Positions 33,742 to 59,811 of a stretch of 64,000 nucleotides of DNA are shown here, one piece after another. Below the pieces are notes generated by a model. It had not been told where the DNA came from and did not search any database. It worked only from the letters and a program-made list of their open reading frames with translations. The position numbers were made by a program, and so were the translations under genes. The DNA is from Basidiobolus meristosporus CBS 931.73 (Eukaryota; Fungi; Basidiobolomycota), in the NCBI GenBank assembly GCA_002104905.1, contig MCFE01000126.1, positions 96,814-160,813 of the forward strand. Direction: 5' to 3'. Position 1 is the first letter of the stretch. Each line of letters begins with the position of its first letter.

Positions 33742-36700
33742 ATGGAGACCGAGTTGACGCAACTGCACAATGTGCTCAACGGTCTGCCCACCATGTCAAA
33801 GGGGATTGTAGATAGCACTAGACATGAGAAGGTTTTCTCTTACATTCAAGGAAATATTACCAAGTACGGGGATGCGTTATATGAAGTGCTAGAAAAGTGG
33901 AACGTTGTCGATACACTATCCGTAAGTTTCCTCCCCCTTCAGAGCCCGCTTGGGTGTTCCCTATGTTGCTTCGAGAGAACAAACCTGTATTGACCGAGTT
34001 GGAAACTAGCGTTGCTTCGAAGAAAACCAGGACTTTCGAGTGACCTCCATAGGTTTGAGGGTCATTGGGCAGCTGATTGACTCGTTGGTGGCCAATCGGG
34101 AGACGCTGTTGGAGAAACTGTTCGCGGACACGAGTGTGTTTACCCAGTTGTGGGAGAGGTTGATTGGGTCGGAGGTGGCTTTACTTCGTTTCGCCTCCAT
34201 GGAATGCCTGAAGAGTCTGGTGAAAAGTAGACTCGGCGCTAGCTGGTGGGCTTTGCACTGTACTTGGGTTTGCGGAAGGGAATTTTGATTATTGATGGGC
34301 TTTTCTTTAGGTTGAACTCTTCGATCGAGTTCCCGGAGATCTTTAGCAACTTGTTATACGACTCAAGTAGCTACGTAAGTGGTTTCCACATATCTCGTGA
34401 TAGGTCGTCATGCTGAACTAGTGGTGCTTATTGTATAGGTTGTCTCCAGCAGCTGCGAGTTTTTCATTTACCTGGTCACCCTTCCGGACACACCGGGCTG
34501 GTCGGATGTTCACGAGGAGCTTCTAGGAAACCTTATCAGCTCCATGAAGCTACTTGCCAACTTGTCGGATATTACCAACCCCAATGGCTCGGTTCACAAC
34601 CGCGTATGCGAGTTGGAATTGATCTGGTCGTTGGTCCACTCAAAGCACCCGCGTTCGTTGAAGTTACTGCACGATCATAAAATGGTAGACTCGATGCAAC
34701 GCGCGATTAGCTACGACCATACTCATCTCCCTTTTTTCAATGCCTAGTTGATGAATATATACGCCCTGCACGGCGATGCAAACAGGGTGATTCAAACGAG
34801 GGCCAACGAGATCCTCAGCACCGTGTTCGAATGGGTGCCATATCCTTTGACATTGCTTGGACCCGCTGACACGTTCGAGCACACCACCAACCAGCAGCTT
34901 CAGTTACAACAGAGTAAGCATGTTCCCACTGGAATCCACATGAATCAACCGCTTATTTCTACGGACAGCCTTTGAATACAGCCTGGCGCACGTCGTGCTA
35001 CCTTTGTTACTGTCGCCAGAAAGCTTCAAGCCACTAGCAGCCATCAGTGTTCTGGACTCGATGGGGAAGCTTGTTCCACGAGATGAAATTCACCGAAGGA
35101 AAATGGGCCAGAGCCTTATAGAAGTCCTGGTTTTCCTGCTTTCTTTGGCGTCGAATCAGACAGACGAGGTAGTGGTGGATTGTCTTACTGCCGACCAGCT
35201 GTTGGAGATCGAACAGAAGGTGGGGCTGCAGCCTAGTCGTTCTCCATCACATGCCTACTAACAGCGTTCATTGTCAGCTGCATGAGCAGTTCGCAAAGGG
35301 AGTTCGGGTAAATACCAATCGTAAGGCTATCGTCCTGAGAACACTGCTGGTTCTTCTCTCTGTCATCAAGAGCGAGCACAACACACTTCAGGTATGGTGG
35401 CAGTATGGTCATTTCGAACGAATCTACAATGACCGGGACATTTCTAGTCCGTAGACTTGATAGACCACTGTTTACATACATTGTCGAATTCAACATTCAA
35501 CCAAGATCAGCGGATTCTGAAGAATGGACTGGCCCTGTTGCATCAACTGTTCGAGCATTTGGAGGAGCAGATCGATGATCAAAAGCTCACCAAGGTATGC
35601 CATATGCTCTAGACTGGCCATGTGAGCCAGTATACTGATGCTTCAGTCATCTCAGGTGTTGAATGAATTGCTGAGCATTCTGAATAACCCGGGATTGTCT
35701 TGTCATGGAGTGAGGCTGCTTCTGGATACATTCAAACATTTCTTGAATACACCAGCCATCGGTCGGGCCGTGTTGAACGTGGGGATTGTGGTGTAGTGTT
35801 AGCACGAGTTTGGGGCCAGCGTTAACTCCGGATTTTCTTCACTAGAGCGTTGGCGAGAGACTGTCTGACGTGTTGGAGAGTAAGTGCTATGACATGAACT
35901 GGGATGTGCGTGATACGGTGCTGGAATTCTTTGGAGAGCTGTTCAATGAGGTAGGCATGACGAGCAGCGCCGGGTGATCCCCCTGAAACTAACGATCCGC
36001 GCAGAATTGCCAGCATGGAATTGAGTTGATCCTCTCGTTTAAGTTGTTGAAAATGGTCATGGAGAAAGTGGCGGATGCCGAGTCGTACGTTCGTGCCTCT
36101 GCCGTACAGACGCTTGGGGTACGTGGATCTGGTCTGGGCTTACTCTTTGCATCTCATCTGACGGGAATTTAGGCTGCAGTGAAGAACCAGAGCGGATGGT
36201 CCGATTTGCATTTGCATGATGGGATCCGCAATCTACTAGGGAAAATGCCCGACCTTCTGTGTGACACCGAAGCATTTGTCAGAAGGGCGGTTTTCGATCT
36301 GATCACGTGCTTGATCAGCTCAAGACAGTATACGCGACTGTTCTTCTCGAGTGAAGCGGGGGAAGAGCCAATCCTGAGGTGAGAAAGCTTGTGAATGTCC
36401 ACCGACCATTCTCTTTAACCATCTCTCATAAGCCACGGGTTGCTGATGAGGCTACTCGACGATTGCGATTGGGAGGTTAGAGTCCGCGGAGTCAAATTCC
36501 TGTACGAGTTGTGGATGGTCAGCTGGAACGAACAAGAATACCGGAACAAACGCGAGTCCTCTGCAGCAGTCAACTGGTTCTTCAACGTGAAAGCTGACGA
36601 GTTGCTGCTAGCGACGGTTGGTTCGGGAGCGATTCATGGTGCTTTGTTCTGATGTACTGACCGGTATCCCTTCTAGATTGAGGATTCGTCTAGATTGGTT

Positions 36701-36976
36701 CGTGGGGAGAGCCTCTCGGCAATCCGCAAGATACTCAAGACCTCTGCGGGCACCGGTACCCTTCAGGGAGGGAAGAGAGATATTCAAGACACACAGGAGT
36801 TGGCGCACGACCAATTCTTGGAGAAGTTACGGAAGATCGACCTGGTCAGGTTGGAAGAATCCGTCGAGGTTGAGCATTTGTATAAAGAAGCCTTAGAGAA
36901 TGACTCGGTTGATAATGAGACTATGATGGAGACCGACCAGCCAAACATCGGAAACAACATCCTGGAATGCTATTGA
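33742..36976 (+). CDS. Multi-exon ARM/HEAT protein, BRAT1-like
   Basis: N-terminal VDSTRHEKV, WDMRDTVLEF, CDTEAFVRRAV, DDCDWEVRV and a C-terminal ILECY* resemble BRAT1 (terminal xCY). Many short GT-AG introns; exon structure not fully resolved. Confidence 0.6.
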
Positions 36977-37274
36977 TTCTTTAGGCAATAAAATCACCTT
37001 GTTGTTGGCCAGCTAATCAGTTAAAATGAGTAATATAATCAGGAAATGCATGGAGATCGGTTAGGATTCTGACTGATTAGCCCACACGTCTAATGGCTCT
37101 TACCCGACCAGCCATTCACCTGGATCCAATCAATTTTTTGCTCCCATTGCTAATGCACGATTGAAAGTTTTCGTAGGAATTTTCATTGAAATTCGCTTTG
37201 TTAAAGAGAGGTTAACCTAAGCTGGTACGGTGTGAACCCTTATCTCTCGTTTCCACCACAGTTCTCTTTTCACC

Positions 37275-40200
37275 ATGACTGATAGTAGTAAGGTATTTGG
37301 GCGAGATTGGTTCGGCTCAGGAGTGGGTTATAAGTGTACTGATTTTCCTGCGTGTCTAGTCTCAGTGGTCACAGATCGTTCCCGATTCGGCCTCGGCTGG
37401 GGAGATATTGGCGATGGTGCAGATTTTCAACGACTGCTTTCGAGCAAGAACAGATGCTTGGAGTAAGAGGATGCTGATTGACCCCTTTGTTACCCCACGG
37501 AATCCATTAACGCGGTTTTTTGTAGACATCTTGCAAGGCTCCGAAGCAAAGTTTTCCTCCTTTTTTACACGCGTCCTTACGCTTGCCCTTCCAAAGCACA
37601 AGGGAGACGATATCGAGGTGCGCAAGGAGGCTTTGATCTTTCTCATAAACTGCTTTCAAAGTCTGGAGAATCCCACCATTAGAGCCGAATGCATGAGGTA
37701 GCCCTCCCTCAAAGTTAGTCTATCTCTCAAGGCCCATCTAATCACCAGCCAAACCCTACTTTGTAGAATCGCTTCGTTGTCGATCTGGAATTGCGTGGCT
37801 TCCCCTGTACGCCGTGAGGCGGAATTCAAATCGGTTCCTCAATTGAAGAAGTTCTGGAGACACCTGGAGAAGAAATTCAACGCCGCCGGTAAGAACTGAT
37901 CGGAGCTAGCTTCTGCTCGGGTGACAACTAACACCATGTTTTGGCAAAGATGATGCCACAAAGGAGCGTCTCAGTTTCGATAGGAAGTGGCTTTCGAACC
38001 TTTTGGCCGGGTTCGTAGATATCTTAGACTCCATCCCCGAAGAAGGGGAAGGTAAGCATCACCAAGGGCACTCCTCCATTCCCCTCGAGACGACTAATCC
38101 TGCTTTCAAGTCTCTATCCACTCCGTATCATACTGCGAGCGTTTCCTTGAGTTCCTGATTGATTTAGAAGCACAACTCCCAACCCGAAGATATTTCAATA
38201 CTCTTCTAGACGATCATAATATTGTGGTTTCGTGTACCCTTTCGGCATTAGCACATAGACCTGACTGGTACTTCATCCTCGATAACTTCCCTCCAAGTGA
38301 TGTGTGTACTAACGCGTAAATGGCCCATGTAGCACCCGATTCCAACAGCTGTTGAATATGCTCAAATTCTACTCACGATTCGAGATTAACGATCAAACAG
38401 GTTCGGCCTTGACGGATAGCGAGATGACCGACTTGCATTCCAAAAGACTGCTGGAGCTTCAGGTGCGCTTTTCCCCAATCCCCCCAATCTCCATGAACCC
38501 CTGCCAACATGTTGTTTTTGTAGCGAGTTGCCTTCTCCTCGTTCCAAAGCCAGCTGAGCCCCCTGGCCCTGGCGAACATTGGTGCCATCGAGCGTAGAGT
38601 GGACCTTGAAAGGCACTTTGACAAACTCTCCGACGAAGAGTTGATTCGTCTGTGCCAGATTCTTGGGCTCCGCACCCAAAAGGTGAACAAGGACGGCGAG
38701 AACGTTTCGCGGAAATTCCTGATAGAGATCCTTGTTTCGCGATACGAAAAGAGAACGAGTCAGATAGACGCAGTGAATGCCATGCCACTCTATCCCGATG
38801 AAAATCTCCTCTTCGACGAACATCTGGAACAGACGGAATCCTACACCGGAAATGAGGTGCTGCCCCTTCCCAAGCTGAACCTCCAATTTCTGACCATTCA
38901 CGACTACCTGCTACGCAACTTCAATCTGTTTCGTCTCGAGTCCGCCTACGAGATCCGACAAGATATCGAGGATGCCGTCAAAAGACTGGCCCCCAAATTA
39001 ATCTTCCCCGAGCGAACGACCGAATTCACTGGATGGGCCAGGATGGCTATTCCTATCGAGACATTCAGCATCGTGGATGTGGAAAAGCCTAATCTTGGGG
39101 AGAAGAAGCCGGCCAAGGTGGCGGCCGACGTGACGTTCAACATCAGTCGCTATACCCCCTCGATACGTGATGAATGGAGCTCTCTTCGTCAGCATGATAT
39201 CCTGTTCCTGCTGACATTGCAGGCAACCAAGGAGTCCCACGCAAAGTACGAGGCCGGGAAGTCGTTCAAGCAGCACTTCGGATTGAAATATGTTCGTGGC
39301 TGTGAGGTCTCGGCCATTCTTGGCCAAGACGGCAAACCGGTCGATGAGTTCATGGACCCAGAGGCCAAGCAGGAATTCTTGGAGGCGAAGACGCGTACAA
39401 TCCGTGTGATGCTGGACCCCAACCAGTACCAAGCAGACATCGACCGCTTCTCGGCCAAGAAGGGGGAGGATGTTCACGAAACGTTCAACGTATTGTTACG
39501 CCGGAATCCCAAAGAAAACAACTTCAAGGGGATCTTGGAGACGGTGCGTGATCTTATGCAAAGCGAGCTGGTCGTGCCTGACTGGTTGCACGACATCTTC
39601 CTGGGATACGGAGACCCTAGCAGCGCCCACTATACCAACATGCCCAACACCCCCAAATCCATTGATTTCCGAGACACGTTCCTCGACTATGCCCATGTCA
39701 AAGAGTCGTTCCAGGACAAGGAGGTTGTTCCTGCGGAGAATTTCGTTGAGCCTGTGTCTCCACCACACGTGATTGAATTCCCGCAGGCTCCACCGAAAAT
39801 CAAATCCGGCACCAAAAGAAAGGCGCCCGAGGAGAGCCAGCAGGTGGACGGCGACCAGAACAAGCTTGTTGTTAGCACGTACACCCTTCCTAACATGGGC
39901 CCCTACCCCTTCAACGTGCCGAATAAGAATCAGATTCGATTCACACCTTCTCAAGTGGAGGCCATCAAGGCAGGCACCAACCCTGGCTTGAGCCTGATTG
40001 TCGGCCCCCCGGGAACCGGCAAAACCGATGTTGCGGTCCAGATCATCGCCAATCTTTACCACAACTTCCCCAACCAACGTATCCTGCTGGTTACTCACAG
40101 CAACCAGGCGCTGAACCAGCTCTTCGAGAAGATCATTGCTCTCGATGTTGACGAGCGACACTTGCTTCGCCTGGGCCACGGTGAGGAAGAGCTGGACACG

Positions 40201-41694
40201 GAGGAGAGTTTTGGCAAATACGGAAGAGTCAACTCGTTCTTGGAGAAACGACTCAGCCTCCTAAGTGAGGTCGACCGCATGGCCAAGTCGCTCCAGCTTA
40301 CGGGGGATCACGGGTATACTTGCGAGACCGCCGGGTACTTCTATCTATATCACATCCTGTCCCGGTGGGAGCCATTCATTGATCGCATGCAGAGTCTTGA
40401 GGGCGATCAGGCACTGGTCCAGACCATTGTGGACGAGTTCCCGTTCACCATGTACTTCGCCAACGCCCCGCAGCCTTTGTTTCCCGAGGCGGCCACTTTT
40501 GAAGAGGCCCTGGAGATTGCCCAAGGGTGCTTCAGACACATCAAGAACCTATTCACACAACTAGAAGAGATCCGTGCTTTCGAGCTGCTTCGTACTGGCT
40601 ATGACCGTTCGAACTACCTGCTCACCAAAGAGGCCAAGATTATCGCCATGACATGCACACATGCGGCGCTGAAGCGTCGGGAGCTAGTCTCGCTCGGATT
40701 CAAGTACGACAACATCGTCATGGAGGAAGCGGCGCAAATCCTGGAGGTGGAGACGTTCATCCCCCTGCTCCTTCAGGACTCAGAAGAGGGGCGGTCGCGG
40801 TTGAAGCGGGTGATCATGATTGGTGATCACAACCAGTTACCGCCGGTGGTCCAAAACGTGGGATTCCAGCAGTACAGCAATATGGAGCAGAGTCTGTTCA
40901 CCAGATTTGTTAGGCTTGGGGTGCCCACGGTGGATCTGGATGCCCAAGGTCGTGCCAGGCCCTCCATCGCCGAGCTGTTCAACTGGAGATACAAGAAGCT
41001 CGGCAACCTCCCCATAGTTGCCCAGAAGCAGGAGTACCAGCTTGCCAACGCCGGCTTCACCTACGACTACCAACTGGTCAACGTCGATGCGTACGAAGGC
41101 TCCGGGGAAACGGAGCCCACCAAGTATTTCTATCAGAACCTGGGCGAGGCCGAGTACGCGGTGGCCATATTCCAGTACATGCGTCTGCTAGGCTACCCTG
41201 CCGAGAAGATCTCCATTCTGACCACCTACAACGGGCAGAAGGCGTTGATCGAGGATGTGTTGAGGGTGAGATGCTCGTGGAACCCCATGTTCGGCAAGCC
41301 AGCCAAGGTCAGCACAGTCGACAAGTACCAGGGCCAACAAAATGACTACGTGATCCTGTCCCTGGTTCGTACGAAATCCGTTGGACACATCAAGGACGTT
41401 CGACGCCTGATTGTGGCGATGTCTCGTGCCCGTCTCGGACTCTACGTCCTCTGCAGAAAATCGCTCTTCGAGAACTGCGAGCCGTTGGCCGAGGTGTTCA
41501 GCAAGTTCGCCCAGCGACCAGACAAGCTCAGCCTGGAAATCAACGAAAAGTGGCCCTCCGCACGCCCGCTGGAGGACACAGGCAAGCCGTTCCTGATCAA
41601 CGACGTTACCCACATGGGAGCGTATGTCCACCAAATGACTCAAGAGCAGGTGGAGCATGCGAAAAAGGCCGACCAAATGGACGAAACACAGTGA
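37275..41694 (+). CDS. AQR: Intron-binding spliceosomal helicase Aquarius (AQR/Cwf11), multi-exon
   Basis: [66 protein letters not shown]. The 5' exons are less certain. Confidence 0.95.
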
Positions 41695-41777
41695 ATTTCC
41701 TATCTTTTACTCAATAAATGTATATATAAGATACCCCGGTTTATATTATATTTTTATGTTCTCTACTATAATACAGC

Positions 41778-42836
41778 TCACTGTTCTATTCCAAATACGC
41801 AATCTCTAGCTTTGTGGCCAGGCTCCAGACAGTGATGACAGTGGTCATGGTCGAAGCGGCACACGTCCATCTTTCCGCATCCCTGGGCATCGTAATTGTG
41901 TGGTCTACAGATTGGCTCCCCGGAGGGTGAAAGACGGACTGGGTAGCGTAAAGGCTTACGGACAAAGTTCTCGGACCGAGCGCGCAAAAACCATGGCTCA
42001 GCCAATGGCGTATGAGGGTCGGCACATCCAAGTAAGAAGGAAGAAAACCACTCGGACGATACACGGCCTGCCATCTTGGCGCTGGCGGTGGGGGTAAGCT
42101 GAGGTAGGGCGAGGGCGAACAAGGCCTCGTTCTTCACAATGATGGTTTCTACTCGAGGTAATAGGAACTTCATCACCTTCACAACGCTTTCCACATCTCT
42201 GTTACCTCCGATATCTACAAACGCCACATTGATCTTGTGCTCCGATATGAGGGTTTGTACCCGCCCAGGATTATGAAGAACGTCCAGACACTCAAATATG
42301 CAGTGTGGAAAGCGTTTTCGAGACTCCACAAACAGGGTAGGTGAGGTTTCTAACCCAACAACCGTACCACAATGCTGAGACAATATGTCTGTGCATATAC
42401 CATATGAGGAGCCGATTTCTAATACATTGTCTGTTTGAAGGATTTGTGCGCGAGCCAGACGACGATACTCGGTAGTGTGCGGGCACAAGATAATGGTTGC
42501 CGGTGAGTTCGGGGCCGCTCTAGGAAATACAGGCGATAGCCGACAAGGATTCACCTGGTAAGTGGAGTCGTCAGAGTGATACCTAACCTGTACTCTATCC
42601 TGAGCCACTTGGTCTTCAGTAGAAGAGATCACGGTAGCGCGTCCAGTGTTCTTATCGGAACGCAACATGACAAAAACTTCGTCGCCTGGGCCGAAGGAAT
42701 AAGCAAGAGGGGAATCCTGGGTAGGGGCAGAGCCTGGATTCGGAGGAGAGAATAAAAATAAACTAGGGATAGGCTCATCTTGCGAAGCAGATGACGAATG
42801 GTCAGCGTTAGGAGCAACAGGCGGAGTAGAAGTCAT
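41778..42836 (-). CDS. SH3/KOW-like + SAM-dependent methyltransferase-like + C-terminal CCCH/CCHC zinc-finger protein
   Basis: Intronless ORF. VLEIGSSYG motif I, GLET motif II, VAFVDIGGNR. C-terminal C-x9-C-x5-C-x3-H then C-x2-C-x4-H-x4-C. First ATG at 42836. Confidence 0.65.
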   Translation of the reverse strand: MTSTPPVAPNADHSSSASQDEPIPSLFLFSPPNPGSAPTQDSPLAYSFGPGDEVFVMLRSDKNTGRATVISSTEDQVAQDRVQVRYHSDDSTYQVNPCRLSPVFPRAAPNSPATIILCPHTTEYRRLARAQILQTDNVLEIGSSYGICTDILSQHCGTVVGLETSPTLFVESRKRFPHCIFECLDVLHNPGRVQTLISEHKINVAFVDIGGNRDVESVVKVMKFLLPRVETIIVKNEALFALALPQLTPTASAKMAGRVSSEWFSSFLLGCADPHTPLAEPWFLRARSENFVRKPLRYPVRLSPSGEPICRPHNYDAQGCGKMDVCRFDHDHCHHCLEPGHKARDCVFGIEQ

Positions 42837-44050: not shown

Positions 44051-44393
44051 TAAATTAACATCAATTCATATTAAAATGCTATATCTAGGATATATGCACC
44101 ACTGGGTGCTAGACCAACTATTTACAACAGTTTACTGAACTCACCTTTTGGCCAACGGATTACTAAGACTAGCACTTCAGGAGGTATTGCCAAAAGTAAA
44201 GAACCAGTCTTTCTCCGGGCCATACAGTGAAAAGACGCTATATTTCGTATTACAACGGGTGACATCTTTCTAGTCCTGGACCATAACGGTTGAAATTTGC
44301 TTGAATCGAATCGAATATTTATTTCTAAAATGATCAGATACGCACGAGTTGATATTCATCCAGTAAATACCAATTTGGAATTAGCCGAGCTAA

Positions 44394-44933
44394 TTACTGG
44401 TGCCAGAGAAATGAGACCCCATTGCCGGTATAGAAGTTGCCGTAGGATGTGGTGTAGGTACCCCCTTGTCCATTGAACTTGTAGTTCCAGTTGCTTGTGT
44501 ATACGCTGCCGTCATTGTTGATGCGCTCCACCACCGCAACGTGGCCAGTCGAGCCGCAGCCCTGGTAGCCTGGCTGGATGACAATGATGGAGGGGACTCG
44601 TGGCTGACTGGACACCACCCACCCATTGACATTGCGAGCACTGGATGGCCAGGTGCGAGCATCGCCCCACCACTGGGTGTGCTGACAGGTCAGCTCGTAG
44701 TAGCGAGCGTCGGCCCAGTCGGTGCACTGGCCATTGTTGAATCGGAACTGGCGAGAGCACGAGGCCAGCACCGAGATGTTGGAGAGCTTGCTTGGTGTGC
44801 CAGACACCTCGGTTTGATTCAGCCGAGCAGAGTTGGAGGGCACGGCTTGAGTCGGTAGAGCCTCGGTTGATGTGGCCAGGAAGGCAGTGGCGGCAGCGAA
44901 TAGATAGGTCAGAGTGGAGGTCAACTTCACCAT
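44394..44933 (-). CDS. Secreted CHAP-domain protein (putative peptidoglycan amidase/endopeptidase), copy 1
   Basis: Hydrophobic signal peptide. NGQCTDWA (catalytic Cys), WWGDARTW, GHVAVVE (catalytic His). 179 aa, intronless. Confidence 0.88.
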   Translation of the reverse strand: MVKLTSTLTYLFAAATAFLATSTEALPTQAVPSNSARLNQTEVSGTPSKLSNISVLASCSRQFRFNNGQCTDWADARYYELTCQHTQWWGDARTWPSSARNVNGWVVSSQPRVPSIIVIQPGYQGCGSTGHVAVVERINNDGSVYTSNWNYKFNGQGGTYTTSYGNFYTGNGVSFLWHQ

Positions 44934-46378
44934 GTTTGTAAGTGTATCAGAATGAATTCTAAGTGATAAGTATCAACTGGGTGCGACTGGGTCTTTTATA
45001 GAATTCGCCTGATGAGTGGTATCGATGCTTCAGCCACTGTGATTGACATTGGGCCACTCCATCCAATAGTATAATGTGTTTGACCAGTTCCAACAAATCA
45101 TAACACGCCAAAGTCATTTAACCGGCTATGGATACATCAATTAAACAGCAACGGAGTCAGCATCCATACCAACTCCCACTTGGGTCCAGGCTAATCTGAA
45201 CATTCGTTCACACTCACATGGAATCAAGCGACCGCATTAAGTAATGACCGTGGTTGCATTCAAAAAGGAAGTGTTGATGTTCTTGGTGTGGTTTCCATAA
45301 AAGTTGAATTGTAATAAGTGGCCCACGCTTCACTCCACTCCATTGATATGCTCAGCTCAATTCGATCTTAGCATTCAATCCAATCGCGAGTCCGGATCTT
45401 AATCAATTGCTGGCATGTATCACAGTGCACTGGCAAATGATGACTCAAGGTAGGGTATTGTAGATAGAGATGCCCTTGTGTGGAGGAGCAACAAGAGGAT
45501 CCAATAGCTATTAGTAGGGTATATCAGGATGAATTCTATATGATATGCATCTATGGAGCGCGTCTTGAAAAGTGATTCGCACACAGGTTGCTATCAGTTT
45601 GACCCCGGCTAACAGTACTGATGTCATTACGTAAGATCATTTAGCCGGCTATAGCCTTAGCTACAACTTATCAACCAAGAAGAAATGGAATTGCTGTTCT
45701 ACCAACTTTCGCTTGGGTATAGGTTTATGTTCCCTCATCTGAATTCTCATTAGAATTTGCATGGAATTACCCATTAAGAAATGACCGTGGTTGCACTTAA
45801 CAAGGAAGTGTCGATGTTCTGGGTACGGTTTCCATATAAGGGGCTTAGTAGTAATCGGCCCACGTTTCGTTCCACGCTACCTCTGAACCAGTAAGCTTAC
45901 CCTTACAACCGATATGTACAGATCATTTCGATCTGGTATTCAATCCAATCGCGAGGCAGGATCTAAATTAATTACTAGCACGTATCACAGTACAATAGCA
46001 AATGATCTTTTAGGGTAGATTATTGAACAATACTCTCATATGGATCCAGAGTCATCGAACAGTAGCAACATGATCCAATACCCTTCCACAATGATTTCAC
46101 ATGTAGAGTTTATGGAAATAGACAAAGCTTACTGGCGTTTGGTTTCAGTAGCTTAATAATTGAAAGCATTTCTATTACTAGTGTTGAGGTTGGATGCTTT
46201 TAGGAAAGTGTATCATGTAGATATGAGGCTCGATCTCACTTAAAAGAAGCCCAGTGCGATTCCTATGATGACTATTTATTACCAAAATAAATATAAAATA
46301 ATCTAGAAGTGGATATTCATCCAGTAAATATCCTATCGAGCTGGTGTAAACTGGGTTTGTTGGCAGGGGCCAAAATAA

Positions 46379-46918
46379 TTATTGGTGCCAGAGGAATGAG
46401 ACACCATTACCAGTATAGAAGTTGCCATAAGAGGTGGTGTAGGTACCCCCTTGTCCATTGAACTTGTAGTTCCAGTTGCTTGTGTATACGCTGCCGTCAT
46501 TGTTGATGCGCTCCACCACCGCAACGTGGCCAGTCGAGCCGCAGCCCTGGTAGCCTGGCTGGATGACAATGATGGAGGGGACTCGTGGTTGACTGGACAC
46601 CACCCACCCATTGACATTGCGAGCACTGGATGGCCAGGTGCGAGCATCACCCCACCACTGGGTGTGCTGGCAGGTCAGCTCGTAGTAGCGAGCGTCGGCC
46701 CAGTCGGTGCACTGGCCATTGTTGAATCGGAACTGGCGAGAGCACGAGGCCAGCACCGAGATGTTGGAGAGCTTGCTTGGTGTGCCAGACACCTCGGTTT
46801 GATTCAACTGAGCTGAGTTGGAGGGCACGGCTTGAGTCGGTAGAGCCTCGGTTGAGGTGGCCAGGAAGGCAGTGGCGGCAACGAATAGATAGGTCAGAGT
46901 GGAGGTCAACTTCACCAT
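46379..46918 (-). CDS. Secreted CHAP-domain protein, copy 2
   Basis: Same motifs; near-identical to copy 1. Confidence 0.88.
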   Translation of the reverse strand: MVKLTSTLTYLFVAATAFLATSTEALPTQAVPSNSAQLNQTEVSGTPSKLSNISVLASCSRQFRFNNGQCTDWADARYYELTCQHTQWWGDARTWPSSARNVNGWVVSSQPRVPSIIVIQPGYQGCGSTGHVAVVERINNDGSVYTSNWNYKFNGQGGTYTTSYGNFYTGNGVSFLWHQ

Positions 46919-48191
46919 GTTTGTAAGTGTATCAGAATGAATTCTAAGTGGTGAGTATCAACCGGGTGCGTACTGGGTCTTATATAGAGTTCACCATTCT
47001 TTTAACCATTAAAATTGTTATCAGCTGGACTCTTGGCACCTGTTCCACTGATATAGCGTGTTTGACCAGCGCCAACAAATCAAAGCACGCACAGGTCTTT
47101 TGGCCGGCTATAGATGCATCAAAAAGTCACTAACCAAACAGTAATAGTGTCAGTGTCCATACTAACTCCCGCTTGGATGATATTCTCTCATCTGGATTTC
47201 CATCTGCATTCAAAAAGAGTGTTGACACCATTTCCATAAAAGTCGATGTGTAATAAGTGGCCGAAGTTTTGTTCCATTTAATCTCTGTACCAGTGCGCTT
47301 ACCCTTCCAACCGCTATTTTCCGTTCATCTCGATCACACTATCCAATGGCAAGTCCAGATCGAAATCAAGTCCTGGCAAATGATTGCTCAAGGCAAAGTA
47401 TTGATGAATATCGGTCTAGAGTCATTGAGGAATAGCTATAGAATCAAATTGCCTCCCAAAATGGTTTCATTGGGTCAGTGAAGCATGGAGTTTGAGCGAA
47501 ACCACGCTAAGCCCGCTGGTGCTCAGTTATCGTAGTTACATTCGTTTATGTATGACCAATCACGTTGCCAAGAGAAAAAAAACTGAAAGGTTTGATGACT
47601 ATAGGAATGTATTCATTGAAAATGTGCGCTTTTACTTCGTTAAAACACTCTAAACAACAAGGAAACTAAAACATGATGATCCTTGATTTATTGAACATCA
47701 CCCACCAATTGATCTTGTGAGAAATTAATAACCTTGATTGTTCTCTTGATGTATTCTGATCTGCTCAAGTTACCAGCTTGTAATGAGCAGAAGTGCGAAG
47801 CTGATAAAACATGAAATCATCGCAATTGTATAAGTATTGCCGTTGGCTTGAAATATGGTTGCTAGGACTGTGATCGAAAGAGAATCTTTACTCTTGACAA
47901 CATATGTGGCTGGGCTCTAGTTATTGCTGTTCCTTCATTCCCAAATTACAAGAGTTAACTGTTTTGAGGATGGAATATTTTCACTCATTGTGGCTTTCAA
48001 TGATTAGAATTAGAGACGATGGCACAATATTTAGAATAGAGAAATTTCTGACATAAAATTTATTGAATTTAATAAGCGAGAAACAAGGCAGCTTCAATTT
48101 CATTATAGTAGCAATAGCATCCACATTTCTAAAGTGAATATCTGTCCGGCAAATATCCAGTTTACCCATTCAACTTATAAGGTCATAGCAT

Positions 48192-48731
48192 TCATTGATG
48201 CCAGAGGAAAGAAACTCCGTTACCGGTATAGAAGTTGCCATAAGAGGTGGTGTAGGTACCCCCTTGTCCATTGAACTTGTAGTTCCAGTTGCTTGTGTAT
48301 ACGCTACCGTCATTGTTGATGCGCTCCACCACCGCAACGTGGCCAGTCGAGCCGCAGCCCTGGTAGCCTGGCTGGATGACAATGATGGAGGGGACTCGTG
48401 GTTGACTGGACACCACCCACCCATTGACATTGCGAGCACTGGATGGCCAGGTGCGAGCATCACCCCACCACTGGGTGTGCTGGCAGGTCAGCTCGTAGTA
48501 GCGAGCGTCGGCCCAGTCGGTGCACTGGCCATTGTTGAATCGGAACTGGCGAGAGCACGAGGCCAGCACCGAGATGTTGGAGAGCTTGCTTGGTGTGCCA
48601 GACACCTCGGTTTGATTCAGCTGAGCAGAGTTGGAGGGCACGGCTTGAGTCGGTAGAGCCTCGGTTGAGGTGGCCAGGAAGGCGGTGGCGGCAACGAATA
48701 GATAGGTCAGAGTGGAGGTCAACTTCACCAT
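48192..48731 (-). CDS. Secreted CHAP-domain protein, copy 3
   Basis: Same motifs; protein identical to copy 2 in the ORF track. Confidence 0.88.
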   Translation of the reverse strand: MVKLTSTLTYLFVAATAFLATSTEALPTQAVPSNSAQLNQTEVSGTPSKLSNISVLASCSRQFRFNNGQCTDWADARYYELTCQHTQWWGDARTWPSSARNVNGWVVSSQPRVPSIIVIQPGYQGCGSTGHVAVVERINNDGSVYTSNWNYKFNGQGGTYTTSYGNFYTGNGVSFLWHQ

Positions 48732-49636
48732 GTTTGTAAGTGTATCAGAATGAATTCTAAGTGATAAGTATCAACTGGGTGCGACTGGGTCTTTTATAGA
48801 GTTGGCCGGATGGGTCTAGCATTGCTTACATACTGCTTTATCCACTGAAATTGTTATTAGATTAACTCAAAGCGTTCCGATCCAATGGTATGGCATGTTT
48901 GACCAGCTATAAAAAATCATTACGAGCAATCCAATTAGCCAGCTATGGATACCGCTACAAGAAATCAAGTAAACTGTAACGGAGCTAGCTACCATGTTAA
49001 CTCCCACTTGGATTTGGCCCAATCTTCTCACATTTGAATTTGCATGGAATCCAGTGACCGCATTAGGAAATGACCGTGGTTACATTAAAAAAGGAAGTAT
49101 CGACGTTCTTGATACGATTTCCAAAAAAGTCAATTTGTAATAAGTGACCCACATTTCGTTCCATTCTCTCTCTGAGTGATTGAGCTTACTCTTACAACCG
49201 ATAAGCCCAGTCTGTTTCGATCTAAGTGTTCAATCCAATCGCAAGTCTGGATCTTAATCAATAGTTGGCATGTGCTACGGTTAAATGGCGAATAATATTT
49301 CAAGGTAGAGTATTACCGAATGACATGCTCTCATATAGCTCTAGAGTCATCGAAGGGGAATACTAAGACCCATGAGCTTCTCAGTATTTCCATTGGTCAA
49401 GAATTATGTGGTAGACTTGTGGAGTTTGTACGAAAAATACACAAAACCCAGATTGTATATTCATAACCATGAGTCTATTGAAAATGCGGGATGCTCAAAT
49501 AAGTCAACTAGTACTGTTTTTAATGATGTTTTTTATTGCCAGAATCAATGTGAAATACTCTAAAAGTGGATATTCATCCAGTAAATATCCTATCGAGCTG
49601 GCCTTGGTTGGCTTTTGTCGGCAGAAACCAAAACAA

Positions 49637-50176
49637 TTACTGATACCAGAGGAAAGAAACCCCATTACCGGTATAGAAGTTGCCATAAGAGGTGGTGTAG
49701 GTACCCCCTTGTCCATTGAACTTGTAGTTCCAGTTGCTTGTGTATACGCTGCCATCATTGTTGATGCGCTCCACCACCGCAACGTGGCCAGTCGAGCCGC
49801 AGCCCTGGTAGCCTGGCTGGATGACAATGATGGAGGGGACTCGTGGCTGACTGGACACCACCCACCCATTGATATTGCGAGCACTGGATGGCCAGGTGCG
49901 CGCATCGCCCCACCACTGGGTGTGCTGGCAGGTCAGCTCGTAGTAGCGAGCGTCGGCCCAGTCGGTGCACTGGCCATTGTTGAATCGGAACTGGCGAGAG
50001 CACGAGGCCAGCACCGAGATGTTGGAGAGCTTGCTTGGTGTGCCAGACACCTCGGTTTGATTCAGCTGAGCAGAGTTGGAGGGCACGGCTTGAGTCGGTA
50101 GAGCCTCGGTTGAGGTCGCCAGGAAGGCAGTGGCGGCAGCGAATAGATAGGTCAGAGTGGAGGTCAACTTCACCAT
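49637..50176 (-). CDS. Secreted CHAP-domain protein, copy 4
   Basis: Same motifs; ends FLWYQ. Confidence 0.88.
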   Translation of the reverse strand: MVKLTSTLTYLFAAATAFLATSTEALPTQAVPSNSAQLNQTEVSGTPSKLSNISVLASCSRQFRFNNGQCTDWADARYYELTCQHTQWWGDARTWPSSARNINGWVVSSQPRVPSIIVIQPGYQGCGSTGHVAVVERINNDGSVYTSNWNYKFNGQGGTYTTSYGNFYTGNGVSFLWYQ

Positions 50177-51235
50177 GTTTGTAAGTGTATCAGAATGAAT
50201 TCTAAGTGATGAGTATCAACCGGGTGCGTATTGGGTCTTATATAGAACTTGCCAGAAGCGCCTAGTATCACTGACCCACTGCTTTAGCCACTGGTATTGG
50301 AGTGAGCACCATCAGACCCAATGGTATAATGAGTGTGACTAATTTCAACAGGTGATGGCATACTCAAGTCGTATATCGTGGTATGTATTCAAGTAAAAGA
50401 TTGCAATGGGTTATCACTGAAGTAGCGGTTGCTAGGCTTGGATGTGGGCTATTGTTTCCTCATATGGAATCTCTGTCGCTTTTACATGGAATCAAGTGAC
50501 CGCATTAAGGAATGGTTGTCGTTACATTCAAAAAGGAAGTACCAATGTTCTTGGTACGATTTCCATAAAAGTCGATTTTTAATAAGTGCATTCCACTCCG
50601 TCTCTGTACTATTATTCCTACCCTTACAACCGATATGTCCAGTCTATTTCGATCTCAGTATTGGATTCAATTGCGAGGCCGAATCATAATCAAAATATTG
50701 GCACGTAACATGGTTTATTCACCAATGAGGACCTAGAATAGAGTATTATTAAATAAGATCTTCCAGTATGGTTCTAGAGTCTTTCAGGGGTAAATGACAG
50801 ATCCAGAAGCCGAAATAGATAAGGTTAATCTATATTATTTGGATGGGACATACCAAAAGCTTATGAGTACTTAATTTCAGTAGCTCGAAAGCTGTAAAGT
50901 ATAACTAATTAGATCATAAATTTTTTGAAAGATTAGATTGGCCAAAAATTGGACAGTAGTAAGTGGTGTTCTATTGCTTACGCATAAACTTATTTCAATC
51001 AATGTGAGTTGAAGTTGAGGAGCGTAGAATAGGTTGACTGCCACTAATAAATGTATGTATTTTAAGTTGGATGAAGCGAGCTTACTGAGTTGGATGCCCT
51101 GAATGTAAGTTTTATTTGCGAGGTGCTCTCTTTATTGCCAGAATAAACATGAAATGATCGAAAAGGGGATATTTACCCAGTAAATATTCTATTGAGCTAA
51201 TCTAAGTGGCTTTTCATCAGAAGCAGTCATGACAT

Positions 51236-51775
51236 TCATTGGTGCCAGAGGAATGAGACCCCATTACCAGTATAGAAGTTGCCATAAGAGGTGGTGTAGG
51301 TACCCCCTTGTCCATTGAACTTGTAGTTCCAGTTGCTTGTGTATACGCTGCCATCATTGTTGATGCGCTCCACCACCGCAACGTGGCCAGTCGAGCCGCA
51401 GCCCTGGTAGCCTGGCTGGATGACAATGATGGAGGGGACTCGTGGTTGACTGGACACCACCCACCCATTGACATTGCGAGCACTGGATGGCCAGGTGCGA
51501 GCATCGCCCCACCACTGGGTGTGCTGGCAGGTCAGCTCGTAGTAGCGAGCGTCGGCCCAGTCGGTGCACTGGCCATTGTTGAATCGGAACTGGCGAGAGC
51601 ACGAGGCCAGCACCGAGATGTTGGAGAGCTTGCTTGATGTGCCAGATACTTCGGTTTGATTCAACTGAGCTGAGTTGGAGGGCACAACTTGAGTCGGTAG
51701 AGCCTCGGTTGAGGTGGCCAGGAAGGCAGTGGCGGCAGCGAATAGATAGGTCAGAGTGGAGGTCAATTTCACCAT
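51236..51775 (-). CDS. Secreted CHAP-domain protein, copy 5
   Basis: Same motifs; upstream flank unrelated to the other four copies. Confidence 0.88.
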   Translation of the reverse strand: MVKLTSTLTYLFAAATAFLATSTEALPTQVVPSNSAQLNQTEVSGTSSKLSNISVLASCSRQFRFNNGQCTDWADARYYELTCQHTQWWGDARTWPSSARNVNGWVVSSQPRVPSIIVIQPGYQGCGSTGHVAVVERINNDGSVYTSNWNYKFNGQGGTYTTSYGNFYTGNGVSFLWHQ

Positions 51776-53492
51776 TTTTTGAATCTCAGAGATTGTTGGA
51801 TGCTGATTTTGAGGTGATAAAAGCTTTTATAACCTGGAGTGGAATGCATCTCTCTCTGACCGACTTTAGCCGTTTTAAATACAGATGTCCAATGGCACCG
51901 TACAGATACATAGCGGGCCGAGTCATTATACCTCTAGTAATACTTCTAACTAATATGGTAGGGCTCGAGGTTTACTGCGAGTAAGTTTAATATACTAAAT
52001 CTGGAGATGTATCCTTGCGATTAACTCAACAAATCAGAATTACTATGCTCACAGCTTATAACTGATAATTCGTGCTACAAACAATGTCCTAAAGATCAAC
52101 AAGTTACATAATAGCAGTCAGCATGCATTATGGTGTTTTTTCTATTAATGTACTTAAGACCCATGGTAGCTTGCTAGTATTCTTTTCTTTTCCCGATCTG
52201 GAATACTATGCAGTATTGTACTTCGCTTCCAACGAATGACAATATAAGCCCCGCAGCTGTTTTAAAGATTCGAATTGCCATCTCGGATTTTCCACAAAAT
52301 GAATCCCAAAAACACTAGATTCCGATTTAACAGTAAGACAAGACTAAAAGCTAACTTCGCTGAATTGAGCATATATCTCTAAAGCGGAAGGTCCCGGGTT
52401 CCCTTAGAAACTTTCTACTTACATTTGTAGTGATCATTACGAGGGATACGTTACTTTCGAGATCTCGCAGCCAGAATGGCTTCGATTTGCTTGTAATGTT
52501 AGAGTACTTTCGCTTACCACTATTATTATCATAAACCCTTTGTGAACTCCATTTCATTATATACTTACTTTGTGTTGTGAGTGCTGACGCCAGAAGAAAG
52601 AGCCCTCGTTGCCAGTGCTACTAATTACAAGAGCCAATCTATTCAGATAACTCCATCGTTTCCGACAGTAAGGAATGCTCCACGAGAATTGTATTCTATG
52701 GTACAGATATCCTCTTCCATCACTATTATTAACTACCTTGCTTTAGTTACTTTATTTCGCTCAAGATATTGCTTGATATTTATCACACGTTGTTTGGCTA
52801 AACTGATATGGAAAGCGAGTGGATGCCAAATATGGAAAGATTAATAATAGCCACGCCTCACATAATTGGAGGTTTGTACCACATTCTTTCAATCCTCAAT
52901 AATCCAATCACCGATTAGAATCTTGGCACGGTCCTGGCAAATCGATTTTCAGAAGAAAGCTCGTACAGGCCACTGCTTTAGAGCTTACAGGATCCTGGAT
53001 TGGTTGCAAAGTCAAGTTGCTACTACCGATGCTATCAAGATACTACCGGCCAGAGTTTGCGCAGATACTTCCAATTCTGTGTATGGATAGTTACTGTCCA
53101 ACCAATCGTACAAAACGCTACCTTTCCATTGCACACCAACCGTTGTTGTTCTATTGTGTATGCAAACTTGCTGGCAACAGAGGGGCTATTTGTGTTGAAG
53201 TGACTGGAGGATATGGCATCTTCCTCATTGAATATACTCTACGCTCCCAAGTAGCAGAAAGCATATTAGCAGGATAGTACACAGAAGTACCCAATCATCG
53301 CGAACAGTTCACTAATTACTTTTTATATATGAATTGGTTCAGCTCCACTACAATTGCATTACTTTCCATAAGTACCTATCCAATTGATCATTTCCCAACC
53401 AAAACGTCATAATCACGGGTTTATATCAAAGGAACGCACCGTAAATACCCTTTGAACCTAAGAGGTCAAGAGGAGCAGCTGCTTTACGATAG

Positions 53493-55111
53493 TCATTTCT
53501 CCGGAGTACCGAACTTCTCTTTGGTGATAGTATAGGTGAGGAGCATTTCACCTTCGGATCGGAGCTTCATGGTGTGGGTTCCGACCTCCCATTCAGTGAA
53601 ATTGCCATTCACGATGGTACTGTCAAAACCGCCATTCCAGGTATCGTCGTCGATAAAGTTCAAATAAAGTGAGAAGGGTGGCGAGACGTCATCAGCCAAG
53701 TCAGTGAACACCGTTGCCTTTGGTGATTTGATGAAGTTCACGTCTTGTCCCGCCCTGATGGATTGATATCTGGGCTTCTCAACCGACCAGATGTACTGTC
53801 CATTCAGCACGATGTCGCCCCAAGCCTCCGCGGTGTCATCGCTCGCGGGCTCCGCGGGATCGATTAGTTTTAAAGAGACGATCTTGAAAGTCCACTTGTA
53901 GCCACGGCGAACGGGATGGCAGGCCTTGATGGTGTATTTGGTGGTCTCGCTGACGGCCGCAAGGTTTCCATTAGCGATGCTACGAAGGGTATAGGAAATG
54001 GGGACGTAGGTTTCCAAAGTAGATTCCTGACTAAAGAAGGAGTTAAGGTTTCCGTCCCGAATCAGATTGATGGCAGCCTCTCGGTTACCACCGATAACAG
54101 CGACGCTAATTTTCGATTCGCTAAGAAGCTTCTGATGTTTGATATCGAGATTGCTGTCAACTCCCAGCTTCAGACCATTGTAGGAGGCCTGGATGGTTGC
54201 GCGTATATCCGAAGAGCTAGCAGAAGAGGTTACCGAGTAAAGCAATACACGCCCGTAGCTAATGCTGGACACAAAGATTGGAAGGTTGTCGGGTCCAAGT
54301 CGACCAAAGCGTATTTGTTCCTTCAAATCCTGCATGGTGAATTGGCTGTTAAAGAAGTCAGCAGGGGTTTTAGGCATTGCGACATCCACGGTGAATGCTT
54401 TCTCGACGAAGTATGCGGCAATGGTATTTTCGGTGTAGTTGCGTTGAGTGTCTAGGGCGGTCTTTGCTTGGAATGCCAAGTACTTGGCGCCAAAACCCAG
54501 GTTTAATGCAGCTGATTCGGCAGAGTTGACCTCGACTGTTTTGTAATGAATATTAGCTCCGGGCCTGTATCCACCGGACTTGGCATGAGACACTAAACCC
54601 GCAATTGCATCACGGACAGCTCTGCGCAAGAAGTTAATTATCAAAAGGCAGAGATGGCAATATACAGGCTTACTTACCCAGAGTCAGGTTTGCAGATGGA
54701 AGATGAGCTCTTTCCATTCAAGAAGTCCACCGTAATCTTCTGTTCGTTGCGATCCCCAATGGGAAGAGGCTTGAATCCTCCTACGCCATCCACATATCCT
54801 TTGCCTTGAAGGAGAGCACCTAACCAGAAGGCATCTGATCCAGTACCAAAAGTTACCAGCTCCTTGGGGGTGTCTGTCAATGTGATGTCCTGGACCGAAC
54901 ATTCAAGCTGAACGCTTCCCATGGAGGCCTCTTGACTTTTAACATCCCCTTTGATGGTGTCCGATGATTGAACGTTAGCAAACTTATCCCAGTCTGGCAA
55001 GGTGGCAAAGTAGTCATTGATTTGGCTACGGTCCGAAGGCAAATCGACGGGAGCAGCGTTCACCTTCAAAGCAGTCAGAAAAAGAAGAGAGATGGCAGAG
55101 AACTTTAACAT
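53493..55111 (-). CDS. Secreted thiol-activated/cholesterol-dependent cytolysin-like (CDC-like) protein, 2 exons (55111-54678, 54621-53493), 520 aa
   Basis: Signal peptide. FWLGALLQG, AYFVEKAFTV, PIFVSSISYGRVLLY, VIGG and VPISYTLR are CDC pore-forming core motifs. A 56-nt intron GTAAGT...TTAAC...CAG (54677-54622) joins the two track ORFs in frame (PDSG|AVRDAI). Confidence 0.85.
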
Positions 55112-56305: not shown

Positions 56306-58310
56306 CCCTATGAAAAATAATTTGGTCCTGCAGGTGGATCCTATCTGGTTCAGCCATCAGGATCCTGTTTGGAGACCATCATAATATCAGCAGCTTGGGA
56401 TTAGTGACCCGCTTAACAATTTTATGACAGGATCACAATGGCATTTGGCTAATTTTACTGCCAAATAAAGTCAAAAAACTTGATGGGGTTTATTGGTGCT
56501 GCATCAATAGTTGCGTGGCATTGTTGCAGTCTTCAAGCCTCTGATGGCATTATTACGGCAGTATTACAGCCTACAGCTAGTTCTGTATAATGCTACCATA
56601 CCAATTTACCAAATGGTATTTCCTTTTTCTACCTCCCCTTGTGCAACTCATATATTCCACTGTAGATTCACCCCACTTTATTTGCTTACCCACTACCACC
56701 TTGGGTATTCCACATATAGTTTGAATCAACAAAACCATGGCCTCCTGCTTACTAACCTCTACAAACACACACACCTGCCACAATTGACATACTCCTATCA
56801 CCTCAACTTTATGGCTTTTTAGTGTGATACTTACAAAGTTGCCATATACCTTGTACTGCCAGTAACATATATATCTTGCAAACATATGCTTGGATGCCAC
56901 CACTTCTGCCATAAATACCTCCTGAATATCTGCAAAGAGCTTTTTGGTATTTAGTCAATATATTCCTTCTCCCTGCTGGATTCTAGTCCCCCTTATGGGT
57001 GCCCTCTGGCTCTTGTTTGTATGAATTCCATATTTAATGGTGTAGAAGTTGGCTTGCAGCCAAGAGAAGCCCAGCATACATTGGTAGGGCTTTCCTAATA
57101 AAAGTTAGTTGCTTGTTGCACCCAACCCAACTTTGCATTACTTAACTGATTGCCCACACATTGGGGCTGCTTAGCTTCTTAATTCCATAGGTATAGGTGT
57201 CTACACATGTACATCAGTCCTCAGTATTTTCCAACTCTTCCTAGCTGTCCTCCATGTACCAACTCATCACATCCATCATGGACTTAAAGGTATTATATTC
57301 TTGATGAGATTGGGATATGGTAGTACCTGCAACTTGACTTGTCTTCCTATCTTCTCACACATCTGCTCCATAGGAAACTCCCAAAAGGTGAAGCAAGGGC
57401 CAATATTCTCCACACACCAAGCAAGATAGAGTAAAGAATGGATACAGTAGCAACAGAGATCTACACCTTCAGCTTGATGTTTGTAGTATAGCTGCTCAAA
57501 TCCTGTTACAAACTCCTTGCATAACAGCTGTAGATGTGTCAAGTTGGCATTAGTGATCCGCTTCTGGATAAATATTCCTACAATGTCCACATATGACCCC
57601 CAATGCTTCCAATGTACTCTTGGTAGGAATGGCTCAGAATGCTACCTGAATAAATAAATATCCAGCTCATCCAGTCTTTGCATTTGTATTGTTGCATATG
57701 CATATGAGTATTGATTGGAGCCTGTGAGAAGTACTTACATGAGCAGATGCTCTGTAACATCTTGCCAATTCTTTCAAATTCCTCTGGTATATCAATGGGC
57801 TCATTTAGCTTGAAATGCCCCATTTAAAACTTAATCATCAGCATAGGGATATTGTTGAAAAGCAAATGCATGCTCTCAGTGGAAAGCTTTTGCTCCAACA
57901 GATACCCTCTATCTTAAGTATCTCTGGTTTCTGATTGATTCCATATTCTGGCTGATGGCTTATAGCTTGCCCACTTTGCTGCAATTGCATGCTGACTTCC
58001 GTACAATCTCTCTGTGAGAAGATGATGTTCTTAGTGTTGGTGTTTGGGTAATAATAATTTGTGTGATTCACGGGGTAATCCTCTGGATCTCATACATCCA
58101 ACAGCAAAACTGTCCATTGTACCCAGAAAAGCCAGCTATTTTGCCAATGGCTGGGATATCTCCAATGCAGATAATGATATGCACTTTGACATGACAACCA
58201 TTTACTGTTATCCTGCTGGAAAGCATACAAAATTCATCCAGCAATGGATACAGGTAGCTATCCAGGTTGGATGGTGATTTAAGCCCAGATACCAATAAGA
58301 CTGCCATCAG
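56306..58310 (-). mobile_element. Degenerate CACTA/CMC transposon, transposase 3' part and terminus
   Basis: GLKSPSNLDSYLYPLLDEF (Transposase_21-like) and HSLLYLAWCVENIGPCFTFWEFPMEQ (DUF4218-like). Terminus CCCTATGAAAAA at 56306. Confidence 0.7.
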
Positions 58311-59769: not shown

Positions 59770-59811
59770 TTAGGGTTAGGGTTAGGGTTAGGGTTAGGGT
59801 TAGGGTTAGGG
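59770..59811 (+). repeat. Telomeric repeat tract (TTAGGG)7
   Basis: Seven perfect TTAGGG units. Confidence 0.97.

Follow-up and report, generated by a model that had tools for sequence, protein, structure and literature searches.

Eukaryotic domestication of bacterial cell wall hydrolases is an established theme, the tick protein Dae2 being one of the peptidoglycan hydrolases so adopted. The NlpC/P60 enzyme of Trichomonas vaginalis (PMC6299479) and the GH25 lysozymes, domesticated across domains (PMC4241558), are further cases. Here we describe a tandem array of five CHAP (peptidase C51) genes in the fungus Basidiobolus meristosporus CBS 931.73, located on the minus strand at 44394-51775 of a 64,000-nucleotide stretch of contig MCFE01000126.1 (the window, in whose coordinates all positions are given unless the contig is named). 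The logic of the earlier cases, in which horizontal gene transfer (HGT) is combined with a secretion signal, duplication, and use against bacteria, is paralleled here, but the enzyme families and the donors are others, and the activity, predicted from sequence for the array, was shown there experimentally.

CHAP genes have been reported from another eukaryote, the oomycete Saprolegnia parasitica, which has seven secreted members, proposed to have arisen by HGT, alongside an acquired family of HlyE pore-formers (PMC3681718). Like Basidiobolus, it is an animal-associated eukaryote (its animals being aquatic) in which expanded secreted CHAPs occur together with a pore-former (HlyE in the one, a cytolysin-like gene in the other), but the two belong to different eukaryotic supergroups. 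No oomycete protein was found among the ~25 named of the 150 best representatives in our sequence library, and the Saprolegnia genes were likely acquired independently of the fungal ones.

Two groups of bacterial and phage proteins allow a direct comparison. The CHAPs of staphylococci and their phages (2k3a, 5t1q, LysK CHAPK 4csh, and the phi812 hub 9eum) have the same fold and Cys–His core as the fungal protein, with 17-29% identity in structural alignments. Where 2k3a has Glu as its third catalytic residue, the fungal protein has Asn148 and, unlike the latter, the staphylococcal and phage enzymes usually come with SH3b, amidase, or glucosaminidase partner domains. The CHAPs of Ktedonobacteria (Thermogemmatispora P0036, Tengunoibacter P0046, and Ktedonobacteraceae P0169) are 50-61% identical in the domain and share the pattern GQCT...GHVAVVE...TSNWN with the fungal proteins. 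At 300-360 amino acids (aa), they also include an extended cytoplasmic N-terminus, a single transmembrane helix, and a linker; the fungal proteins, by contrast, consist solely of the domain preceded by a short leader and a linker. An unusual architecture was seen in the bacterial protein P0182, which clusters with the Ktedonobacteria CHAPs and combines, in 545 aa, an N-terminal Ser/Thr kinase with a C-terminal CHAP of the same subfamily.

For the B. meristosporus genome, 806 HGT candidates, mostly intronless, have been reported (Tabima et al. 2020, PMC7466969); CHAP is unmentioned in the text of that study, and a search of published full texts turned up no paper in which CHAP or PF05257 is named for Basidiobolus or Entomophthorales. 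The five genes themselves already have annotations, either as hypothetical proteins or as "Peptidase C51 domain-containing." What is added here is the affinity to Ktedonobacteria, the sharing of the family across Entomophthoromycotina, and concerted evolution limited to the coding region. We consider it likely that the array is a local tandem amplification within a large secreted CHAP family of Ktedonobacteria-type ancestry, that it serves an antibacterial use, and that its copies are kept uniform by selection and gene conversion.

Five near-identical CHAP genes

The array consists of five intact, head-to-tail open reading frames (ORFs), each of exactly 179 aa in the ORF listing and with a Pfam CHAP match. 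Copies 1 (44394-44933) and 2 (46379-46918, the query of our homolog searches) correspond to the public models P0324 and P0323; copy 3 (48192-48731) encodes the same protein and thus also equals P0323, but differs from copy 2 at 11 nucleotides, 10 of them within-codon synonymous changes. Copies 4 (49637-50176) and 5 (51236-51775) equal P0325 and P0001, so that all four distinct protein sequences exist as gene models in NCBI, UniRef, and EukProt. As the uninterrupted ORFs equal public models of 179 aa, the copies are intronless. At the protein level they are 98-99% identical, with only six variable alignment columns. A repeat search aligned the five in register, their starts being 1985, 1813, 1445, and 1599 bp apart; copy 5 is the first in the direction of transcription, the region upstream of it lies outside the repeat, and tblastn found no sixth copy or remnant within the 64-kb window. 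The initial annotation had read these as five intact intronless genes with a Cys/His dyad and a signal-peptide-like leader, and the ORFs, the public models, and the motifs present in every copy bear this out. Antisense ORFs inside the CHAP genes (e.g., 49469-50101 on the plus strand) were dismissed as by-products of the GC-rich coding strand.

Pairs of coding sequences (CDSs) have 11-21 nucleotide differences, nearly all synonymous, with synonymous divergence (dS) of 0.06-0.15, nonsynonymous divergence (dN) of 0-0.01, and dN/dS of 0.03-0.13 between copies; as judged from these ratios, all five are under strong purifying selection, and the tandem amplification proposed at the outset is real. 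The similarity is confined in space. When the five units are aligned, pairwise identity averages 88-100% between about -25 and +525 (counted from the ATG) and 0.69 in the 50 columns just upstream of this block; it is down to roughly 0.5-0.6 by ~100 nt 3' of the stop codon, and most of the spacer sequence stays at about 0.35-0.55. Synonymous divergence within the CDS (~0.1) is thus far below the divergence of the flanks. Of the 34 variable sites in the CDS, 27 are within 180 nt of its start or 90 nt of its end, and 35 of the 66 pairs among 12 parsimony-informative sites fail the four-gamete test. The failed pairs, combined with five highly similar sequences whose identity ends near the CDS edges, point to gene conversion, and the pattern is best explained by conversion among the copies, chiefly on the core of the coding region, together with purifying selection.

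Each copy also appears to carry its own regulatory signals. A motif scan found TATA[AT]AAG at -56 to -68 from the ATG in all five copies: TATAAAAG of copy 1 lies at 44993-45000 on the minus strand, 67 nt upstream of the ATG, and the other four lie at 46979-46986, 48791-48798, 50237-50244, and 51824-51831. In copies 1-4 the ~75 nt directly 5' of the ATG are near-identical. Downstream, a polyadenylation-like AATAAA hexamer, identified by motif only, is found 71-128 nt past the stop codon in all five, that of copy 1 at 44318-44323 on the minus strand (71 nt past the stop) and those of the others at 46275-46280, 48059-48064, 49532-49537, and 51131-51136. The GC content of the CDSs is 0.56-0.58 compared with 0.38-0.41 in the spacers, and GC content at third codon positions (GC3), 0.68-0.72 in the CHAP copies, is indistinguishable from the 0.68-0.79 of adjacent housekeeping genes. 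The four spacers are 1445 bp (44934-46378; AT-rich, GC 0.41), 1273 bp (46919-48191), 905 bp (48732-49636), and 1059 bp (50177-51235) long, the last three with GC of 0.38-0.39. Some of them contain a dispersed repeat of 130-160 nt with 62-78% identity (45191-45320, 45728-45857, 49017-49146, and 50459-50588).

These features bear on the possibility that the array is an assembly chimera, a contamination, or an over-expanded repeat, a reading that beyond the general risk of draft assemblies has nothing in its favor. The sequence runs unbroken into intron-bearing fungal genes 1.5 kb from the array, and the flanks in the window are eukaryotic (Aquarius, CLASP, galactokinase [GalK], a GalE-type epimerase, and copia-type and LINE reverse transcriptases [RTs]), which, together with the mapping of the CHAP proteins and their neighbor to a B. 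meristosporus CBS 931.73 contig, places the array in a fungal genome, as the initial annotation had it; the contig chimerism that it had named as a possible objection was not borne out. The four spacers are unlike in length and sequence, and most of the 34 sites that vary among the copies are synonymous. Paralogs are also present on many other contigs and in the independent B. ranarum assembly. Given the differing spacers, the synonymous divergence, the host-like GC3, and the motifs of each copy, contamination, chimerism, and over-expansion were all rejected, and we regard their combined probability as negligible.

The encoded protein belongs to the CHAP family by several lines of evidence, as had been proposed from the sequence. 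Pfam CHAP (PF05257) matched residues 65-148 with E = 2.6e-15 and 57.1 bits against a cut-off of 26, and GQCTDWA (Cys70) and GHVAVVE (His131) are intact in every copy. In an alignment of 23 fungal and bacterial sequences, Cys70, His131, and Asn150 are invariant; position 148 is Asn in the array and Asp or His in some paralogs, and the C/H/N(D,H)/N pattern is retained in nearly all fungal family members examined. An AlphaFold2 model built from the same 23-sequence alignment has a predicted local distance difference test score (pLDDT) above 90 across residues 70-179; residues 5-21 form an isolated N-terminal helix, residues 23-49 are a disordered linker, Cys70 sits within a helix (69-82), and His131 opens a strand (131-138). 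The top 13 Foldseek matches in PDB to this model were all chains of CHAP proteins (E 4.6e-6 to 4.8e-4), led by 5t1q (Staphylococcus aureus amidase), 9eum (phage phi812 hub), 2k3a (S. saprophyticus), 4csh (LysK CHAPK), and 4olk (LysGH15), and a profile search of PDB sequences gave 2k3a at 1.9e-19 and 5t1q at 1.4e-18. Cys70 and His131 align with the catalytic GQCT and GHVA of 2k3a and 5t1q, and TSNWN aligns with SEMN of 2k3a so that Asn148 stands in place of Glu and Asn150 is conserved. By profile, dyad, and third residue, the modeled protein is a CHAP domain of papain-like α+β fold. Its N-terminus, MVKLTSTLTYLFAAATAFLATSTEA/LP, starts with MVK, continues with a hydrophobic core (Kyte–Doolittle up to 2.1), and ends with TEA/LP in an A-x-A-like cleavage context; it resembles a cleavable signal peptide, and the CHAP proteins are probably secreted. 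The linker contains two N-x-S/T sequons.

Probable Ktedonobacteria-type ancestry of the fungal family

A single-sequence word search first retrieved about 35 clusters of Basidiobolus paralogs with 52-73% identity and, next after these, proteins of Ktedonobacteria (Thermogemmatispora at 61% and Tengunoibacter at 53%, in the domain only) together with metagenome proteins labeled "surface antigen." Outside the fungi, the closest relatives without exception belong to Ktedonobacteria (Chloroflexota) and share 50-61% identity. Among the best 120 matches of a profile word search there were Ktedonobacteria-like metagenome proteins only and no further eukaryotes. At E ≤ 1e-3, an exhaustive HMMER search with the 120-aa domain identified 962 library representatives, of which 14 passed E ≤ 1e-30. 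We also scanned 185,579 prokaryote genomes, one per species, with family-specific peptide patterns and found 137 relatives, the best 77 loci all being from Ktedonobacteria or Chloroflexota. A phage search gave six weak matches that were used solely as outgroups.

Phylogenies placed the array in a wider fungal family. In a FastTree analysis of 310 domains, all Basidiobolus sequences formed one clade (support 97) whose sister (94) was a group of ten sequences comprising five from Entomophthora muscae, one each from Massospora cicadina and Conidiobolus coronatus, and three from the environment. A clade of six distant library representatives (P0174, P0176, P0217, P0254, P0283, and P0235) has an N-terminal CHAP domain. 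A more careful IQ-TREE analysis used the LG+C20 posterior mean site frequency (PMSF) model on 103 rows and a short alignment of 116 columns, and was rooted with CHAP domains from Bifidobacterium, Lactococcus, Staphylococcus, Enterococcus, and Calothrix plasmids and two phages. Fungi and Ktedonobacteria split from this other-phylum outgroup at 100/100, and all fungi formed one clade (95/90) that was present in 96% of the bootstrap trees and contained the Basidiobolus clade (94/88) and the Entomophthorales-type group (97/97). When rooted with the outgroup, the fungal clade lies ~8 nodes inside Ktedonobacteria, beside P0179 and P0169 (the source label of the latter being Ktedonobacteraceae). As far as these sequences go, it is a firm conclusion that the fungal CHAP family falls within, or is sister to, a CHAP subfamily otherwise seen in Ktedonobacteria and that it is common to Basidiobolales and Entomophthorales.

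A bacterial origin of the fungal family is, on this evidence, well supported, and a transfer from bacteria to fungus appears the parsimonious direction, as CHAP is a widespread domain of bacterial wall enzymes and every named eukaryotic member comes from one fungal group. Several observations pull the other way and should be counted against a nested bacterial ancestry. The backbone nodes that place the fungi inside Ktedonobacteria have weak support, 43-83. By an approximately unbiased (AU) test, a topology in which the bacterial members of the family are monophyletic was not rejected (P = 0.39); as the bacteria may then be a single sister clade, the direction of transfer is argued from distribution and not proven. 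The patterns of the prokaryote scan were family-specific and reveal the home of the closest family, not an absence of CHAP from other phyla, and source names are known for only ~25 of the 150 best library representatives.

The age of the transfer can be approached from the same data. One alternative is that Basidiobolus recently acquired the gene from gut bacteria and then rapidly amplified it: the five copies are intronless, and many of the 806 mostly intronless HGT candidates in this genome have been ascribed to gut-associated bacteria (Tabima et al. 2020, PMC7466969). The homologs of Entomophthora, Massospora, and Conidiobolus, however, form one clade with those of Basidiobolus (95/90), the best bacterial relative is only 61% identical and that in the domain only, and GC3 is the same as in neighboring host genes. 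Moreover, the nearest bacteria are soil and geothermal Ktedonobacteria and not Proteobacteria, Firmicutes, or Bacteroidetes. A recent, Basidiobolus-specific transfer is thus very unlikely and already largely refuted. The full compositional amelioration and the shared fungal clade argue for an old transfer rather than a recent one from gut bacteria, and the family probably came long ago from soil Chloroflexi bacteria. The initial annotation, which had proposed a horizontal acquisition and suggested a phylogeny against bacterial CHAPs, was right about bacterial origin (Ktedonobacteria at 50-61% identity, split at 100/100); the scenario that it implied, of an acquisition recent and private to this genome, needs correction. 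It had regarded nesting among long-standing eukaryotic homologs as an argument against transfer, and the tree agrees by half: the genes are long-standing in fungi, but their ancestry is bacterial.

A less probable but serious alternative is that more than one transfer took place, with Basidiobolus and Entomophthorales receiving the gene separately from related Ktedonobacteria-like donors, or one fungus from another; the shared family would then be uninformative about common ancestry. The branches of Entomophthorales are long (0.99-1.42) and the alignment has just 116 columns, the fungal groups are unresolved on the backbone of the quick tree, and the placement of Basidiobolus in the fungal tree has been termed "rogue" (PMC9391592). 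Against this, the mixture-model tree unites the fungi, as described above, and the FastTree of 310 rows likewise joins them (94). A single entry into the common ancestor of Basidiobolales and Entomophthorales would remain the most likely course.

Within Basidiobolus the family has expanded greatly. Cluster look-ups identified at least 45 CHAP gene models in B. meristosporus CBS 931.73 within the length range searched, among them runs of consecutive accessions on one contig (ORX93708-93713, ORX99940-99945, ORY01071-01073, and ORX96280-96282) and several pairs. Given several similar runs in the genome, the five-copy array is not a singular feature: the array that had been singled out at first is real but not the whole story, being one of several runs among at least 45 genes. 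The nearest relatives of the array in the tree are P0002 (record MCFE01000126.1) and the pair P0003/P0005. As the quick tree has no B. ranarum sequence inside the window clade, the fivefold amplification appears younger than the divergence between these paralogs. Two more CHAP genes, of 181 and 169 aa, are located ~40 kb into contig MCFE01000126.1, and directly upstream of them (at about 31-39 kb of the contig) is a gene model of 8462 aa without a Pfam match. The contig region 31315-51861 and the window overlap in repeats only.

Neighborhood of the array

Outside the array, 1.7 kb from it, is a gene similar to thiol-activated cytolysins (53493-55111, minus strand), whose public model P0301 is named "Perfringolysin" and has 510 aa. 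Exon 1 of the two (54674-55111) starts with the signal-peptide-like MLKFSAISLLFLTALKVNA, and exon 2 lies within 53493-54644. The gene, searched exon by exon and as the public model, matched Pfam PF01289 with E = 1e-23 but not the usual C-terminal domain 4. P0301 has four Basidiobolus paralogs with 74-91% identity, and its nearest nonfungal relatives are bacterial (Polyangiaceae and Armatimonas; 35-40%), suggesting that it is probably a second acquisition of bacterial type beside the CHAP array.

The window is divided into three parts by composition. Positions 1-24000 are AT-rich (GC 0.37-0.40) and laden with retrotransposons, including copia-type RT and gag/integrase fragments; 24001-42000 form a housekeeping block with GC of 0.48-0.54 (GalE, GalK, CLASP, and Aquarius); and 42001-64000, with GC of 0.40-0.47, contain the CHAP array, the cytolysin-like gene, transposase fragments, and a LINE. 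The LINE is of APE type (59870-63538, minus strand), its ORF2 of 917 aa having RVT_1 and endonuclease domains and being preceded by an ORF of 299 aa. Abutting its end are seven perfect TTAGGG units (59770-59811), suggesting a telomere-associated or formerly subtelomeric location for the array. Between the LINE and the cytolysin-like gene, a short ORF (58068-58307, minus strand) has a weak match to Transposase_21 of the tnp2 family (E = 1.6e-5, below the Pfam cut-off) and is a probable decayed fragment of a DNA transposon.

Possible function and significance

The proposed history would begin with a membrane-anchored CHAP wall enzyme of a Ktedonobacteria-like Chloroflexota bacterium. After its entry into the fungal lineage, the gene would have come to match fungal genes in codon composition, gained TATA-like and AATAAA motifs as well as a leader resembling a signal peptide, and undergone repeated tandem expansion. 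In the present-day protein, the N-terminal signal peptide would direct the pre-protein to the endoplasmic reticulum (ER), with probable cleavage after Ala25, and a linker of ~35 aa, with many Ser, Thr, Asn, and Pro residues and the two potential N-glycosylation sites, would hold the 120-aa papain-like domain. There Cys70 may act as the nucleophile and His131 as the base, with Asn148 and Asn150 as orienting residues, and the bond that the enzyme cleaves may be an amide or a peptide bond of bacterial peptidoglycan, located in either the stem or the cross-bridge. Fungi have no peptidoglycan, and foreign bacteria are therefore the likely target; by lysing or digesting the bacteria that it meets in the gut, in dung and litter, or on insect cadavers, the fungus could gain in competition, nutrition, or hygiene.

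Peptidoglycan hydrolysis directed against bacteria thus seems the most likely activity, and here too some points count to the contrary. The substrate, the secretion, and an induction by bacteria are all things that we infer. Many lytic CHAP enzymes bear wall-binding modules, and Pfam scans found none (LysM or SH3b) in the array protein or in longer paralogs. The CHAP superfamily also includes amidases acting on other substrates than peptidoglycan, such as glutathionylspermidine (Gsp) amidase, which was a weak Foldseek match to our model at ranks 22-46. One may accordingly imagine enzymes that kill no bacteria and instead trim peptidoglycan fragments to blunt immune sensing by the host, or cleave a different γ-glutamyl or amide substrate that comes from the host, an insect, or a fungus. 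The retention of the family in the obligate insect pathogens Entomophthora and Massospora fits such a role, as do the lack of a wall-binding domain and the diversity of the superfamily just mentioned. We nevertheless find it unlikely: the solved structures nearest in sequence and in fold all belong to enzymes with which Gram-positive bacteria and their phages hydrolyze peptidoglycan, and the bacterial sister proteins are extracytoplasmic, membrane-anchored, and labeled "surface antigen" at the source.

On the sequence statistics, purifying selection and conversion confined to the coding region hold the array near-uniform, which would raise the dose of one enzyme. The strong purifying selection, the near-uniformity, and the promoter- and polyadenylation-like motifs that each copy has of its own suggest, at the level of sequence, selection for a large amount of a single enzyme, and such arrays make a clean case of concerted evolution restricted to coding sequence.

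Basidiobolus inhabits the bacteria-dense guts of amphibians and reptiles and reportedly influences those communities. A tentative scenario, which we put forward as possible without favoring it, is that one ancient transfer of a Ktedonobacteria CHAP into the ancestor of Basidiobolales and Entomophthorales was followed by growth to at least 45 genes in conversion-homogenized arrays, giving a possible high-dose secreted bacteriolytic arsenal that, possibly with adjacent pore-formers, shapes the herptile gut microbiome. If this were true, the single transfer would be a rare genomic change tying the "rogue" Basidiobolus to the insect-destroying fungi. The restriction of the family to Basidiobolus and Entomophthorales also makes it a separate source of evidence on a contested node in the phylogeny of fungi, and the apparent donor, mycelial Chloroflexi, is unusual. 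The small, single-domain, eukaryote-adapted enzymes may be of practical interest as lysins, and a large, conserved, secreted-looking family of bacterial-type wall hydrolases is a testable candidate for the means by which a fungus attacks or feeds on bacteria.

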